A stretch of DNA of 64,000 nt, from the NCBI GenBank assembly GCA_037447605.1, contig CM074804.1:4193909-4257908 (forward strand). Reading direction: 5' to 3'. The notes beneath the pieces were generated by a model. It did no database searches and had not been told where the DNA came from. It saw only the letters and a program-made list of their open reading frames with translations. The number at the start of each line of letters is the position of its first letter. The stretch's first letter is position 1. The stretch comes from Zygnema circumcarinatum SAG 698-1b. Lineage: Eukaryota; Plantae; Zygnematophyceae. The translations under genes were made by a program, and so were the position numbers. Shown here piece after piece: positions 55,501 to 64,000 of the stretch.

Positions 55501-56721
55501 ATAACGGCGTGAATGAATGGGGAACGGAATGGCAGTTCCCAACACGAAGTTCACGAAGGATCATACCAACCATACTACTTAGTTCTCTTCGGGTAAACTC
55601 ATAACACAATTGTACCTCCACTTCACTCCGCATGACGATCCAAAGTGATCAGTGCAGCAGCAAAACTGAAGGAGAACCGCCATAGAAATGGCATAGAGCT
55701 GCCGTAACTTGCCATAAAGTGCTACAAAACTAGTATGAAATAGGTATTTTGCCATAAAATTGCTGCAATCTGCTGTAGAACTGATATAGAACTGCTGTTA
55801 ATTTACAACTGCAGTTCCATCTAGGCGGGCGGTAGTTGACGCCTGCCTGCAGGAAGAGGCCCATGGCGGTGGCCCCGAGGAGGACCCAAAGCAGCGCGTA
55901 GCCACTCTTCGCGCCGGCCTGAAGGTCGCTCTCGATGTTGCCCGGGTCAAGGTACGCGATGCTCATCAGGAAGCCCGGCCCCGTGAAGGCAATAAGCTTC
56001 CTCCACGAGAACTTTGGCACTGATCGGTAAAAAATGGGCAGAAGACAAAGGCAGTAATGAAGTAAGAAGCTGAAGTTGGTTCTTCAGCTAAGAACCATGC
56101 TTATCTCATCTCCCTGATAAAAAATGATTGCGCAGCAAGTTGATTTCGGTATTGCGGATTCTTTTTGAAGGCGCAATAATTTCATTGCTCCTGAATAAAG
56201 CTCCTTTTCTGGATATGCAAGATTATGATCTCATCCATGACCCACATTTCTTTCGTCACGTCCTTTCAAACACAATAAACACCTTGATGAGAGGCTCCCT
56301 TACATCCTGACCACCTTTTCATCCATCCATCAATAAAGTATACAGGAAAACCAAAAGGAAGCGAATCTTCCGCACAATTAATGAGACTCATCTTCAAAAT
56401 TTCTCCGTGTCGCCTTAATCACGCCTCCTTCAAGTCAAAATTGAAGTTTTAAATAATGCCTCTTCCAAGAAGACCTGAGCTTCAGGGAGTTAACGTGTGT
56501 CAGAAGCTTCCGAGAAGCTGCTGATATCGAGAAAGAGAGTGCGGTTGCCTACCACCTCGGTGGTTCAATTCTTCGCCTTCTACTGCTGACGTGGCCTCTT
56601 CGCATTCTTCCACGTGAACCTGTGCTGCTGATCCGTACGCGTGCTCCTCCTCCAAGATTGCAGCGGCCTGAGACTGACATTCCACTTCAGAGGGACGTCG
56701 GAGAGGCAATGTGGGCACCAT
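52566..56721 (-). CDS. NRAMP: NRAMP divalent metal (Fe/Mn) transporter, NRAMP2/3/4-like
   Basis: [46 protein letters not shown] and the consensus transport motif [20 protein letters not shown]. The last exon (52566-52660) is tentative. Confidence 0.95.
53280..54040. repeat. Polypyrimidine/polypurine low-complexity tract in an NRAMP intron
   Basis: Several hundred bp of C/T-rich sequence on the plus strand. Confidence 0.85.
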
Positions 56722-57862
56722 GGAGAGAGAGAGAGAGAGACAGAGACAGAGAGAGAGGGAAAGATAGATAGAGAGAGGGAGAGGCACAGAGGGAGAGAGA
56801 GTAAGGGAGAGTTCAGTATGCTTTTTATGATATCTGAGAAGCTGGAGCGAGGCGGGAGGAGGAGAACGAGGGCGCGAGTCAGCCCCGAGGGGCCGCGAGA
56901 GGGAGGCGGGAGAGGCGCAGGAAACACAGCGTGCACGGCCGCTGTTCCGTTGTAGCGGACGCTCTCAACTGGCTCTATGACCAATTTAAGAATGAACGGG
57001 ACCATAGAACATGAAGGGGGGAAGTACATGGAAAAAGTTGTGTTACTCTAGCACAACTTGTACGCACGTGGCGAATCGCTATTGGAAGACGCTCCGTAAT
57101 TGGAGGAAAGTAACACAGGGCTGTGCGCCCCGCGCGAGGACGGGTCCCCCTTCGACCAATCAGAGACCTCGGGACGTGTTCTTGGAAAAAAAGGAAAATC
57201 TTTAGGAGCCTCCGATTGGTCGGGCGAGGACCGAAAGCCGGGCCGGGCCTGGGCACGGGCTTCACCAGAGACTGTAACGGGAACTGTGCACATGGAACGA
57301 GGACACTTCCGTGCAAGCTCCGTCGGAGCCCAACATGTGACGTGTCGGAAAGGCAAGGATAAACCACGTGACGTGGCACAACGTGGATGACATGTCAGCA
57401 AGCATGAGATGTCACATGCTGCTGACGTGGCAATGAACGCCTCGGGGGTTGCCACGTGTCATCCGAAGATTTGTGAACACGTATTGGTGATCAGCCATTC
57501 ACGGTCAACGTGGCGCCCCGAGAGCAGGCAGGCAGAAAGCAAGGCCCCACACAAGGTACCGACTTTCGAGGCAAAGCTAAGAAAGGACAAGTAACTCACT
57601 CTCTCTTTACAGAATCGCATCAAAAATGGCAATTGATGGCAGTGCTATCATGGTTGTCCACTCAAGGCCCAACACTGCCACTCTCCTCTCCCCTTTCACC
57701 TTTGCCTACCCTCCCTGCCCAAACATTCCCTCCTAATACCTGCTGAATATAAAGTTGACTACAACTTATCTACAATGCACATTCTCTCTAAAGTAATAAA
57801 ATAAAAACTCACCGGCGAGGAGAGTTTAGAGAGAGAGAAAGAGAACGACAACCAGCACCTGC

Positions 57863-60800
57863 TTAGATCCCCTTGTCCGGCGAGTAGGAACCGGAACTCG
57901 TGGAAGGACCGGGAGAGGGAGGGTGCCTCCTCCTATTGGCTTCTAGCCCTATCAACGTCAGGCAGAGCATGACGACAGGTGGCAGCAGCACAGAGAGCAG
58001 GAGAGCTAGCGTGGTTGGGCCGGAGTCACTCCTTTCGGGCGGTGGGGGCACGAGGGGGAGGCTGAGCTCGGGTAGGAGCACTCGCTCCAGGTAGGGGGCG
58101 AAGGTGCCCCGCCCTGCAATCTGCGTAACTTCAGCAGTGACCACACTCGAATTTTCCGCAGTTTGTGGAATAATGCCGGCGTTACTCCATGAGCTTCCCG
58201 TCCAAGCACGAACGCCCACTGCACGGTGGCGGAACAGCGGGTTTGAGGGGAAAATGTGGTGTAATGTAATTCCAGCATTTGAAATAAAGGAAAACGCGAA
58301 AGTGAGTTGCTTTAAGATTTCAACGGTTGTGGAAAAGTAGTTATGTGCGCGTATGAGCTGTCTGGGTGAAAGGGTAGAAGGCACTACCTGAGCCGTTGAT
58401 GCTGTCCGAGATAGATGCAGTGATGGTCAGATCAGCAGCTACAGGGTTGCCTCTATAGATCATCCCCACTACCGTTGCTCCTCCTTGCAGCCGCCTGCTT
58501 ACCCACGCACCGCCACCAGCTGGAACAAATTCAGCAGCAATTCATTTTTTTGGAACAATAGCAGAGGAGCCAGGACATAAAATGGAGAGAACGTCATGGC
58601 GAACTTGGAGGAGAGACGCTGCGTCGATAGAGCATCATACAGAGGTCGAGAGTACCCAAACGAGTAAAGACGATGAGACAGCCGAGCTGCAAACTTTTCT
58701 GCAGCAGAGCGCGGAGAGACGCTTACAAGTCCTCCGGCAGAGGTATGATGTCCTTAAACGCGTATATGTAAGCTGTCACGTCACCCCCAACAGGAACTGA
58801 ACTGTCTGTGCAGTCAAGTGAGCAGCTGGAGGGGCCCACAGCAGCCACAAAATCTGCTCCTCCGCTGGTTTGCACTGCAAAATGCTCACATCCAGTTACT
58901 GCAAAACATTAGAGATTCTATCAACACAAATTCAGAGAGAGAAAGCAGGGCTGCAGACATGCGCATAGCTCCATGCATGCAACCTTGAGAGAACCCGAAG
59001 AAAACTGTCCCCTATATTCTTACCTACAGCCGCCGCCATATCCACTTGCGCTGAGGTGAAAGTTTCGACGGGAGTGCCCTCCGCCTGCCCCTGCAGGAGG
59101 CCCTCTGCCAGCTGGCCAGGGAGCAGCAGCACCGCTGCAAACGTGCGGTTTCGGGCAGTCTCGCTCACACTCGGTTGACTGCCCGCCACGAGGATGCGGC
59201 TGGCGAGGGAGAAGAGGCACTGCAGCAGTTCAAACAACGAGAGAAAAACGCAAACATCTCAATCGAAAAACAAGCCAAATTTGGGTCACAACAAATGCTC
59301 GCCATTGACAAACCCGCTTAAGCGGTAATGCGGTGTTAAGTCATGGAGAGCATCATGGATAGCACTCATGGAGAGTACGAAACGCGATGCAGATTTGCGG
59401 AAAAGGACGAACCTCTGCTGTGCGGCGGGTGAGCTGCATAGAGGCCGCCGGACCACTAAACAAAGGGGTGACGTCACTCAGCACATTCAGGATGCTGGTG
59501 AGCTCGGTGTCTGTGATGCTGCCAAGTGGCAGCGCGTCTGTGGCTCCGCCGACAAAGCACAAAAGCTGCTCCAAGTCTGCTGCAGAGGGAGCGACCGCCG
59601 CCGCCCCCCACAGCAGCAGCGACCCGTCCAGGACCGCCACAAGCTCGGACGCTGCATACACGCATCGCAATAGCTTCACACCTCGGGGGTAATGATACAA
59701 GGAAGCACAATTGAAAAAGTAAAGGCAATACATTTTACACAGACACACACACACACACGAGCTCACATGAAATTGAAGAAATTTGAAAACTCACCATTCT
59801 GTGCGCCATACAGCCGTAAGTAAATATCTGCCGTTTGCAGCGCAGCTGTCACATCCCCCAGAGACAGGGCAGGCTGTAGGACGTTCACCACCCACTCGGT
59901 GGAAGATGAAGGGGCACTCACTTCAGCTGTCGTAAGAACATCGCTCGCATTTGGGACCACCAAAGTCTGCCCGTACGTGACAGTGGTTGATTGACCCTTA
60001 CTGTTGCTCACGGAAACAAAGAGAGTGACATTTCCGGGAGGGAGATAGACAACCTGCTCGTAGAAGGAGCTCGGGCCTGCCAAGAGAATGACTTGACTTG
60101 AGTTTTCCAACAAACAGCTGCAAGCATACTGAAGAGGGCGATCTTCATCTTGGGCAGCCCAATCTATTGCCGAAATCTTGTACAAGTAACCAGTCGGATC
60201 CCCATTTGCCGGCTGAACCTTGACACTTCCCCCCCAGGGGGCTTCACTCCCTTGAACGGAGAGTGTGGCGGACGCTGCTAAAGCTCCCGAGGACGACTCA
60301 AACACATCGCAGCGGAAAGGGTACAACATGCTAACGTTTAGCGTGCTTGCAGATATTGCCAACGGCCGATCTGTGACTGTACAGGCCAATAACCCAAGCA
60401 AACGAGAGCGAGAGGGGGGGAGAGAGAGAGAGTGCATGAGTCCCAGTATGGTAAATGATAGTTCCCTAACCTCCATTTTCTCTCACTCTCACCCTCACAA
60501 ATTATGTGGTACATCCAAAGAAAACACCATGCAAGGAGACACAAACTTCTCATCTCTCTCTCTCTCTCTTCTCTTTCTTCTCTCTTCTCCCTTCTCACCA
60601 TTCAAGTTTAAGTCCCCGTCGAAGCTTGCATATGTCCATGAATAGGTGTACGGCCTGCCAGGGGTAGTGCAGCTCAGTTGCAGCATTTTGGAGTAGTCTA
60701 TCGCTCCCTTTGCAGCCTGCGCATCACTCCGTTCCACAGAGATTTCCGGCACAGCTCTTTCCAGCACCTGAATCGCGGCAAATGCGGCCTGATTCACCCT

Positions 60801-63800
60801 CCCAGGGACTACCTTTCCGCGGAAGGCGATCGGATTCCGCGACACTTCAACTTTAAAAACATATGTACCACTAGTGAGGCTGAACTTGGGTATGAGGATT
60901 GACGGTTGATTGAGACTAAGGACAGATTCCTGGTTGGGAAAGCACTCGGAAATACTGAAATCTCCATTCTGGCAGCTCCAGATGTACTGGAATGGTTGGT
61001 CACCTCCCGACTCGTCAGGATCTATCGCACTTGCTTGCAGCAACAAGTCCGAATTTGCAGAAGCGGTACGATTTCCCCCGACAATTGCTACGTAGAGATC
61101 ACTTGGCTGAACTGCTACTGTAACTACGTCTTGCGAAAAGAGGCTCTCATCGGCCTCCATGGTTGCAGTGACTGCGAAAGTGTAAACTTCGCCCGCAGTG
61201 AGGGCCATGGCAGGGATCGCAAAGGACGTGGTTGAAGTGCTACGGTTTAAAGGAGCGGAGACTGAAAGGTTGAGGTCAGGGCCGGCAAGTTGGCTCCATT
61301 GCAGGCTGACAGAGGTGCCTCCACTATACTCTTCTTCAGATAAGCAGGTCGTGTTAGGGCGAGTGACTCGGGCATTCAGAACAAGCGGTTGGTTTCTTGC
61401 GGCCACAACCTCACGCACCCCTCCTTTTCCTCCAGGCACCAAAATCCGTACGGAAGGCAGTGGGTCTGCACTTTGCAGCACATTAAAGGCGGCAGTTCCT
61501 ATGTCAAGCTGCTGCGCGTCTGTTGCGTAAACCACGAACTGCACATTTCACACATCCCCTCTGCAAATTAGTCACAATAGTAGCCATGAGGAGTACAACA
61601 AAAGTAGCGATGATTACTCGAAAAGACAAGGAAATATGAATGGAATCGCTATTCACCTGATAGGTGATTCCTGGAACAAGGATCCCAGGAGGAACTGCAA
61701 GCAGTGGAGAGGTTGCATTGTGGCTGCTGAGCAGAAGGTCAAGTTCAGGCGAGCTCTGATTCGACACCACTCTGTAGATGAACTGCTCTACTATTCCCCC
61801 ACCGCTGATCGAGCCCGAAGCATCCATAGTGACAGCATCGCATATTCCGGCCACAGGAGGGCCCCATAGCTGAGCCACAATTGTGCGGGGAGACCTCACT
61901 ACTCCTCCTTTTCCTGATTCCCTAACGGCGGGGCCCACTGCCACCGAGCTGACTGAGGTGTAAGAGGCGTTTCCCTTAGCAGCTAAAACACTACGCACAG
62001 TTATCGTCGCATTCTGAGCCTCAGAAGATAAGAGTCTTGTGAAGGGTGTGAGCTTTGGCTTCACTCCGAGCAGCACTGCAAGCACGGAGGAGCTTCTCCA
62101 GAAGCAGACAGGACCGGCTCCAAGGAGAGAGACGGTGGTCTTAGTGAGAACAGAGCTGCAGTTTATCCTGCTCGAATGTTTAGCCCCTGCACGGTCAGTT
62201 GAGGATGTGAAGGTGACCGAGATTCCGCGCTGTGTCATGTCAAATAGAGCAGATTCTATGACAGGAGCCCTTTGAGGCAGCACAGTGAGTGTAGCCGGAC
62301 TCCCCCCCACCTGAACACCTCCCACAGCGGCTGAGATACTGAGAGAGCTCGCCTGCGAGGGCTGGCAAGCGAGCAGAATTCCGCCATTAGGAACATTCAC
62401 AAGCGAGGAGTTTGCTAGTGCAGGATCTGCAACTTGTACGGGAAGCGGATCGCCGGATGAAAGCTCTATCACAGTAACTTCTATGTCCACTCCAATTGTC
62501 GCATTCACCAAGTTGAAGTAGGCATCCCTCGCTACAACCACAAAGTACACAACTGATCCCGCAACCCCTCCAGCAGGTGCTAGCAAAGACGTGCCTCTAG
62601 CTGAGGTGGGGCCCGCGAGGACTGTGAGGTTAAACGGGCTACCGAGGGGTTCAATTCCAGAGGCAGCCTCTGCCACTGTTACTGCCACTGTTCCCGCGCT
62701 AAAAGCAGACAGTGTTCCCGTGTAGGGGCTCGAGGGGCCGGACTGCAGAAGGCCGGCCACTTCTGAACGTCCGATTGGGGGAGTCAAAGTGAGTGTGAAA
62801 GTCAGGTCTGGGCTGGTGTACGGATTCCCATACGCATCAGCAGCAGTGAGGTTGAGCATAGCCGAGCTTCCTGCCTGTATGGTGGTCGGAAACACACTCA
62901 CACTGCTGATGCCTCCATAGAATGCGCCTGCCATGCTCCAAAGAACAGATCATGAAAACATGAATCCCGAGGATGCTACTTTACCAAGCACAGCAGAATT
63001 TTTTAAAGATGTCGAGCTTGCTAGTGTCTCACCTGGGCGTATAGTCAGCGGGCTGGAGGCCACCTCAGTGCCATTGAGATGAAGTCGTAGCAGATAAGCT
63101 CCCGCAAAAGTGGCTTGATAGCTGCCTATGTAAGCTCCCATGCTGGAGACTCTCGGAATAGAAGTCATGACAACCTGGGAGTCGCAGAAGCAGCACAAAA
63201 GCAAAAGCAACGTGCGTCACTTTAATATACGAATTGAAGATAAAGCGAAGCTGAGATTCGGCTTTCTTTAACGCTACTCGCTTGGTTTCCAAATCTAGCC
63301 CCATCCATCTCAGCTTTCATACTCAATCTCGGACATTCAAGAAAGAAATTCTCCAGCCCCTTCTAAAAATTTGAACTCCATTGAAACGCCGCCTCACTGT
63401 TTTTTTTGGCTTCAATAATATTAATCTCCAAAATTTACTAAAGATGGTTTTTTCTAAAAGTAAAAAAAAAAAAAATACCTCCAGCCACTATGGTTTCAAT
63501 TTGAAGTCCAACTTTGCACCCAATGGAGGGGGAGAGGAACAGAGAGGGCAGCGAGTGGTACGAGTGGGCGGAAAAGCGATGTGCATTACCTTTGCAGTGT
63601 CTTCCCGCAGCAGATCAAGAGTAAGGAGGTCTGCTTCCTCTCCCGTTTCGTGTGCTCGCAGTTGACCGCTTTCATCAAACGTCTGCACTGTGACTGATCC
63701 AACAGTCCCAGCATGCGTACTAAGTGTACCGGAATATGTCAAGGTTGCATTGACAGCTGGGCCTGCCGTAGAGAAAATCATCCAAAAAATGTAATAGGAT

Positions 63801-64000
63801 CAGGTGGATTAGGATTAGGTTTGATCCAAGGCAACGCTGCTCATTACCATCAAAATATAGCAACGAGATTGCTTGCAAGTTCAGAAGACGACATGGACAA
63901 AGACTGGAGCATGTACTGAATGACACAAACAGCTGTGGTTGGGAATCCTTTGCCTGCCTGCTGACACGCCCCTAACGCTGACTGCAAACAAAACGCATCA
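57863..64000 (-). CDS. Large single-pass membrane protein: filamin-type Ig repeats, REJ domain, degenerate GAIN/GPS, TM; N-terminus beyond the right edge
   Basis: Ig repeats (AGSVVYFVVVARDAYFN...VGGSPATLTV; AGSSAMLNLTAADAYGN...GSPFNLTV); REJ hallmarks (LQWSQ, LTAGEVYTFAVTA, LLLQASAIDPD...FQYIWSC, APWGGSVKVQPANG...ISAIDW...DRPLQY); W-x4-W-S-x-x-G...TFA GPS-like motif; hydrophobic TLALLLSVLLPPVVMLCLTLIGL followed by RRR and a 26-aa tail. Confidence 0.85.

Follow-up and report, generated by a model that had tools for sequence, protein, structure and literature searches.

The rear (3′) part of a very large gene is predicted on the minus strand of the stretch of Zygnema circumcarinatum DNA analysed here (contig CM074804.1; 64,000 nucleotides, hereafter the window), running from position 63762 to 57863 and continuing off the window at 64000. 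We consider this region to be probably the 3′ part of an intact gene, predicted from its sequence to encode a giant type-I plasma-membrane glycoprotein with a rod of immunoglobulin (Ig) domains, a REJ region, a GAIN-like domain next to the membrane and a single transmembrane (TM) helix. Sequence comparison places the predicted protein in an uncharacterised single-pass family that is conserved from prasinophytes to Zygnematophyceae. A first-pass annotation of the same DNA had pointed out Ig repeats, REJ, a helical segment and a GPS-like motif, followed by a Pro-rich stalk, a lone TM helix and a tail of 26 residues, and all of these are present on the minus strand.

The REJ assignment is direct. 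With one exon at a time or a database homologue as the query, as in all searches reported here, Pfam REJ (PF02010, cut-off 25 bits) matches exon D with 83.3 bits (E = 1.9e-23, profile positions 14–248) and exon E with 52.3 bits (E = 4.6e-14, profile positions 265–449); jointly, the two exons span essentially the whole 452-position model (14–449). The conserved REJ cysteines and motifs are retained, and Pfam also places a K319L-like PKD domain on exon D (9e-9). These two REJ scores and the presence of one TM helix uphold the earlier proposal of a polycystin-1/REJ-type ectodomain on a single-pass protein. Sequence searches of the PDB with exons D, E and J singly returned no match.

Ten exons, A–J, are predicted from three-frame translation and splice-site reading of positions 57500–64000. 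Their borders are GT–AG, their phases are mutually consistent and the frame switches between open segments in the three-frame translation coincide with GT...AG borders, leaving ~1400 codons open over exons A–J. The features are listed below with reference to two homologues, P0001 (Mesotaenium endlicherianum ME000070S09146) and P0002 (a Logan protein).

Exon A, 63590–63762, minus strand: N-terminal half of a filamin-type Ig repeat, placed by GT–AG borders and phase; alone no Pfam match
Exon B, 63033–63174, minus strand: C-terminal half of the Ig repeat begun in exon A; weak Filamin match (profile 61–92, E = 0.15); aligns with P0001 residues 245–291, adjoining the exon C match directly before it
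Exon C, 61657–62927, minus strand: 423 residues; two filamin/invasin-type Ig domains, then a conserved pre-REJ module
Exon D, 60599–61538, minus strand: 313 residues; PKD-like domain and first half of REJ
Exon E, 59795–60376, minus strand: 193 residues; second half of REJ; matches P0002 with E = 2.6e-27
Exon F, 59413–59681, minus strand: 89 residues; start of the helical part of the putative GAIN-like domain, placed by its position between REJ and exon G
Exon G, 59024–59219, minus strand: 65 residues; helical part of the putative GAIN-like domain; holds LLQGQAEGTPVETFTSAQVDM
Exon H, 58727–58898, minus strand: 56 residues; first beta part of the putative GAIN-like domain; 50% identity to P0001 residues 1482–1523
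Exon I, 58388–58494, minus strand: 35 residues; middle beta part of the putative GAIN-like domain; phase-compatible splice, weak acceptor
Exon J, 57863–58218, minus strand: GPS-like motif, Pro-rich stalk, TM helix and tail, with the stop at 57865–57863
Exon J, first part, 58082–58218, minus strand: degenerate GPS-like motif VRAW..SSW...TFAPYLE, without cysteines and without HL^T
Pro-rich stalk, 58016–58081, minus strand: read from the translation
Single TM helix, 57944–58015, minus strand: Kyte–Doolittle mean 2.58 over 19 residues
Cytoplasmic tail of 26 residues plus stop, 57863–57943, minus strand: basic start, Ser/Pro-rich

The exon model is supported by the uninterrupted homologues P0001 and P0002, which keep the residue order predicted across the H–I–J junctions. 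Both are collinear with exons B–E, H and J in BLASTP searches with single exons, and chance is excluded because these collinear homologues match exons C and D (E = 4e-57 and 3e-52, respectively, for P0001). Some borders are less firmly placed: the 5′ border of exon F is uncertain, with a second in-frame acceptor ~30 nt downstream, and exon H has an alternative in-frame acceptor a few codons downstream. Exon F alone gives no significant match and exon I alone no significant score; by eye, exon I aligns with the stretch before the W..W motif in P0001 and P0002. A GA/CT microsatellite at 60546–60596, in the D–E intron, mimics a Glu/Arg/Lys-rich tail of an open reading frame (ORF).

The TM helix in exon J is the only segment within exons A–J that exceeds 2.0 on the Kyte–Doolittle scale, and the same exons contain 22 N-glycosylation sequons. 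Through its stop, the predicted protein has no PLAT domain and no multi-pass (11 TM) or channel-like C-terminal part, and the minus-strand ORFs in the 1.8 kb between the stop and the neighbouring Nramp gene contain no Pfam domain. We regard the stop at 57865–57863 as the predicted true end of the protein, because the homologues end alike and the Nramp gene lies 1.8 kb on without a domain-bearing ORF between. The first-pass annotation had likewise seen no PLAT, channel or intracellular domain, a view that is borne out on the same grounds. A multi-pass PKD1-like protein with overlooked exons was considered and rejected, since the stop, the ends of the homologues and the neighbouring gene all oppose it. 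The Nramp metal-transporter gene itself begins 1.8 kb downstream of the REJ gene stop on the same strand (first coding exon 55730–56020, minus strand; Pfam Nramp 3.6e-6, profile 1–31), and a second GA/CT microsatellite (56722–56811) is intergenic, after the REJ gene.

Ig rod and post-REJ region

The outermost part of the ectodomain is a long rod of filamin/invasin-type Ig domains that is predicted to extend upstream beyond the window. In exon C, Pfam scores for such domains all fall below cut-off: Ig_GEX2_N (PF23616) reaches 5e-4 (20.6 bits; cut-off 27 bits), Filamin (PF00630) 1.6e-3 (19.7 bits; cut-off 26.9 bits) and Invasin_D3 6e-3. A filamin-type Ig fold is nevertheless present in this exon by structure. 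An AlphaFold model of exon C, built with nine homologues, has a mean predicted local distance difference test score of 76 and consists of tandem beta-sandwiches; its top three Foldseek matches are FdeC (4e9l, 3.6e-12), filamin A Ig3–5 (3.6e-11) and the Dictyostelium filamin rod (1wlh, 5.4e-11), with further matches to InvD, InvE, invasin and SbsC (5ftx). The same proteins are recovered when the family profile is compared with PDB sequences (bacterial FdeC, 3e-20; filamin A, 8e-13), with Chlamydomonas FUS1 (9qs0, 4e-10) in addition. The last ~160 residues of exon C correspond in alignment to the beginning of the conserved REJ module of canonical relatives.

The ~300-residue region that follows REJ appears to be GAIN-like and homologous to the membrane-proximal GAIN domain of polycystin-1-type proteins, with good but transitive support from profile comparisons. 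The post-REJ regions of P0001, P0002, P0004, P0012, P0041 and P0103 were combined into a family C-terminal profile, which matches exon H (1.1e-12), exon J (4.9e-12) and exon G (6e-6, positions 102–171), the last of which also aligns with P0001 and P0002. The same profile matches canonical GPS-bearing REJ proteins (P0124, 2.5e-8; P0017, 2e-7; P0073, 3.5e-5), and the family consensus vRyWd..W..g...afaPy is in register with the P0073 GPS, CRYWD..W..GC...C.C.HLTSF. When the family alignment was compared by hhalign with 40 canonical REJ-to-GPS regions, the match was 97.7% (E = 1.5e-12, 256 columns) with a score of 91.8, and the reversed, column-shuffled and block-shuffled controls scored 7–20. GPS and GAIN clusters are among the nearest neighbours of P0002 residues 985–1357 in a language-model atlas, with scores below 0.9 that we treat as a lead only. 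For a structural model of P0034 (884 residues), Foldseek results were dominated by Ig arrays and a wide VIA-align search recovered a GAIN match. Among family members of at most 1200 residues, none has a complete cysteine-free GAIN together with a TM helix.

In the window protein, as in all green-lineage members, other residues stand in place of the four GPS cysteines and of the His-Leu-Thr triad, and exon J holds no canonical GPS (four cysteines plus the HL^T/S autoproteolysis site). Judged from these replacements, the domain is probably a degenerate GAIN in which the cleavage chemistry has been lost; given the established requirements of GAIN autoproteolysis, loss of these residues makes self-cleavage unlikely. 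The REJ–GAIN tandem proposed in the first-pass annotation thus stands in part: REJ is above the Pfam cut-off, and the GAIN half is supported by transitive profile evidence around a GPS without cysteines or HL^T.

Relatives in green algae, a liverwort and other lineages

A HMMER search with exon D against the 1.84 billion representatives of a 15-billion-protein library gave 275 matches at E ≤ 1e-3. The closest is P0001 (39% identity, E = 3.8e-45); none of the matches exceeds 39% identity, and the predicted window protein itself is therefore absent from the library. Other matches include Closterium sp. NIES-53 CAI7831654.1 (P0004), Mesostigma viride Mv19333 (P0012, 6009 residues), Tetraselmis striata TSEL_000492 (P0156, 6891 residues), Pterosperma (P0041), Cymbomonas KAK3238988.1 and KAK3281997.1 and a Rhodomonas-containing cluster; P0003 and P0005 are, like P0002, Logan proteins. 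Identity to the green-lineage relatives is 26–39%, and by Pfam the relatives share a core in which filamin and Ig_GEX2_N-type repeats precede REJ. The architecture is not peculiar to the Zygnema genome but is that of a conserved green-lineage family.

The C-termini of P0001, P0002, P0012, P0041, P0103 and P0156 have in common a W..W motif, the motif F/Y-x-P-Y/F-L-E, a Pro-rich stalk, one TM helix and a tail, an order present in Mesotaenium, P0002, Mesostigma, Pterosperma, Cymbomonas and Tetraselmis; the Closterium model is partial and its end is missing. The tails of the homologues range from 18 to 239 residues (22 in P0001, 18 in P0002) and their sequence is not conserved, and the Pro-rich stalk is kept in all green-lineage homologues. 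In P0009/P0156, P0012, P0041 and P0103 the stalk is made up of SPPPP/PPPPP runs resembling plant extensins, and such stalks occur in walled and wall-less green algae alike. The P0001 model repeats a ~70-residue helical post-REJ stretch almost verbatim (1212–1373 and about 1402–1560), a pattern that suggests an artefact of assembly or annotation and not a real duplication.

In a maximum-likelihood tree of the region equivalent to exon D, the window protein groups with Mesotaenium, P0002, Mesostigma, P0005/P0006, P0040/P0082 and one Cymbomonas protein (SH-aLRT 85), a grouping with modest support and several long branches. No member of this group carries a canonical GPS. Non-green relatives of metagenomic or cryptophyte origin (P0023, P0013, P0098 and P0016) have the same filamin/Ig_GEX2_N rod and REJ; they possess a canonical GPS (C..W..W..GC..C.C.H[LT]T.F) and several TM helices. 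Since these relatives keep the canonical GPS and the multi-pass part, the Ig rod was joined to REJ before the cleavage motif and the multi-pass part were lost.

The relatives extend to a liverwort. P0027 (Marchantia paleacea KAG6557914.1, a hypothetical protein encoded on a 5.1-Mb contig) matches Pfam REJ with 3.2e-30, exon D with 3e-20 and the pre-REJ part of exon C with 6e-10, and its post-REJ part matches the family GAIN-like profile by hhalign (83%, E = 8.5e-6). Its gene model contains a Pro-rich stretch, without an Ig rod and without a TM helix; it may be incomplete, or it may represent a shortened land-plant form. The first-pass annotation's statement that land plants lack this family was too strong, and the survey of streptophyte algae and land plants that it had called for yields relatives in Mesotaenium, Closterium, Mesostigma and M. 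paleacea, none of known function. No relevant paper emerged from a literature search on REJ in combination with GEX2, Zygnematophyceae or Marchantia.

Proposed role and alternative readings

The predicted protein combines N-glycosylation sequons, a very long Ig rod, REJ, a membrane-proximal domain and an extensin-like stalk, without a cytoplasmic domain. A role in adhesion or tethering is the most likely one for such a protein, although we would put its chances at about even. Outside the cell, the Ig/REJ ectodomain would attach to a partner, for instance a wall or mucilage polymer or the surface of another cell. The GAIN-like domain would stay in one piece and serve as a rigid membrane-proximal base rather than a self-cleaving switch, and signalling, if any, would depend on a second membrane protein. 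Several points weigh against this picture. Pfam, which the first-pass annotation had recommended as a check and which places REJ above and Filamin below cut-off, finds no match in exons F–J, including none to GPS (PF01825) on exon J. Nor does any of exons F–J, taken singly, score significantly with a profile made from canonical GAIN regions; it is the lack of a direct match of either kind that makes the GAIN assignment transitive. Lastly, scaly flagellates that lack a wall have members of the family too, which means that a role specific to walls could not hold throughout it.

The closest functional precedent, by analogy of architecture, is the sea-urchin protein suREJ1, which has one TM segment and binds fucose-sulfate (PMC10855541). 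Like the window protein, suREJ1 has REJ followed by a GPS/GAIN region, one TM segment and a short tail and lacks a channel; suREJ1 acts via other membrane proteins. It carries EGF and C-type lectin domains where the window protein has its filamin-type Ig rod, and its GPS contains cysteines. The window protein differs further in lacking the GPS cysteines and HL^T, in the Pro-rich stalk inserted before the membrane and in coming from a green alga. The polycystin-1, PKDREJ and PKD1-like proteins share with it PKD-like Ig domains, REJ and the homologous post-REJ domain adjacent to the membrane; unlike them, it has no PLAT domain, 11-TM/channel-like part or coiled-coil tail, and its GPS is degenerate. 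PLAT and the multi-pass part are features of PKD1, PKDREJ and suREJ3 and not of suREJ1, a single-pass precedent (PMC10855541) that qualifies the earlier generalisation that the family normally continues into such segments. Relative to the GAIN domains of adhesion GPCRs (BAI3 4dlo, latrophilin, GPR110), the window protein lacks the 7TM domain, the autoproteolysis triad and the disulfide cysteines. We rejected assignment as an adhesion GPCR, because there is one TM helix only and no 7TM follows the GAIN-like domain.

The precedent of suREJ1 also bears on whether the protein could be the sensor half of a polycystin system divided between genes, in which REJ–GAIN would sense wall or mucilage strain, or a ligand, and gate a separately encoded PKD2/TRPP channel, much as polycystin-1 does for polycystin-2. 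Its ectodomain is of the polycystin-1 type, and the single-pass suREJ1 triggers an ion-flux response in sperm (PMC10855541). However, the tail has only 26 residues and is not conserved among homologues, and the tethered-agonist mechanism requires a GPS cleavage whose motif is lost here. Polycystin-1 joins polycystin-2 via its last six TM helices and a C-terminal coiled coil, and neither of these channel-joining parts is found in the window protein. We consider it unlikely that the protein serves a separate PKD2 channel as its sensor. It is far harder still to credit that the gene is a decaying or mis-assembled pseudogene whose architecture is not expressed as one protein. The absence of the protein from the 15-billion-protein library, with a best match of 39% identity, and the weak acceptor of exon I would fit such a gene, but ~1400 codons are open across ten exons with consistent phases and GT–AG borders, the predicted junctions, including H–I–J, follow the residue order of P0001 and P0002, and the REJ cysteines and motifs are intact.

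A different possibility is that the protein is a member, or an ancestor-like form, of the GEX2/FUS1 gamete-adhesion family and recognises or attaches conjugating cells. GEX2 of land plants and FUS1 of Chlamydomonas likewise cross the membrane once as type-I proteins and carry rods built of filamin/invasin-type Ig domains, and GEX2 has a similarly short tail. The top templates of the window protein (FdeC 4e9l, Dictyostelium filamin 1wlh and SbsC 5ftx) are those reported for FUS1/GEX2 (bioRxiv 10.1101/2021.09.03.458930), and the family profile matches the sequence of the FUS1 crystal structure (9qs0). Ig_GEX2_N exceeds its cut-off in several homologues (29–77 bits: P0001, 29.2; P0002, 30.5; P0014, 77; also P0005), although not in the window protein (20.6 bits), and these matches overlap or neighbour Filamin matches of the same fold. 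REJ proteins, moreover, act in sea-urchin gamete recognition (PMC10855541) and are gamete-recognition candidates in Ectocarpus and Cryptosporidium. Set against this, FdeC and filamin outscore FUS1 in the profile comparison (3e-20 and 8e-13), making the Ig match generic, and exon C has REJ clusters, not GEX2, as its neighbours in the atlas. A word-index search with the A1 profile returned only long protist and bacterial Ig/REJ proteins, with no GEX2 and no land plant; the same type of search with P0002, whole or C-terminal part, returned P0002 alone and missed even P0001. The ectodomains of GEX2 and FUS1 consist of Ig-like domains only (about 7) in about 800–1100 residues (bioRxiv 10.1101/2021.09.03.458930), whereas in the window protein, which is several times larger, REJ and a GAIN-like domain separate the Ig rod from the membrane. 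Orthology to GEX2 was rejected, the ectodomain not being Ig-only, and the comparisons made here show no specific kinship with GEX2/FUS1 beyond the type of Ig domain. Membership in that gamete-adhesion family is accordingly quite unlikely, and a role limited to conjugation is similarly improbable. A broader proposal would make the Ig, REJ and uncleaved-GAIN family an ancient green recognition receptor, acting in conjugation and in bryophyte sperm–egg contact together with PKD2-type channels, with GEX2 and FUS1 as its shortened descendants; the family would then be the plant-lineage counterpart of suREJ1 with polycystin-2. We regard that combination as very unlikely.

Under the preferred reading, that of a surface protein for adhesion or tethering, the family may be significant in several respects. 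The REJ and GAIN modules have mostly been discussed as animal or protist inventions, found in polycystins, sperm receptors and adhesion GPCRs. The protein described here is of the known REJ/polycystin-1 kind, in an unstudied variant that is widespread in the green lineage and not a one-off. This single-pass, non-channel REJ–GAIN form appears to have been kept across the green algae, from early-branching lineages up to those most closely related to land plants, and a liverwort retains a REJ relative. It would also provide a natural example of a cysteine-free, probably uncleaved GAIN-like domain carried on neither a 7TM nor an 11TM body. Members in Mesotaenium, Closterium and Marchantia are open to attempted knock-out, and the family as a whole offers a class of unstudied candidates for adhesion at the cell surface, for tethering to wall or mucilage, or for contact between mating cells.

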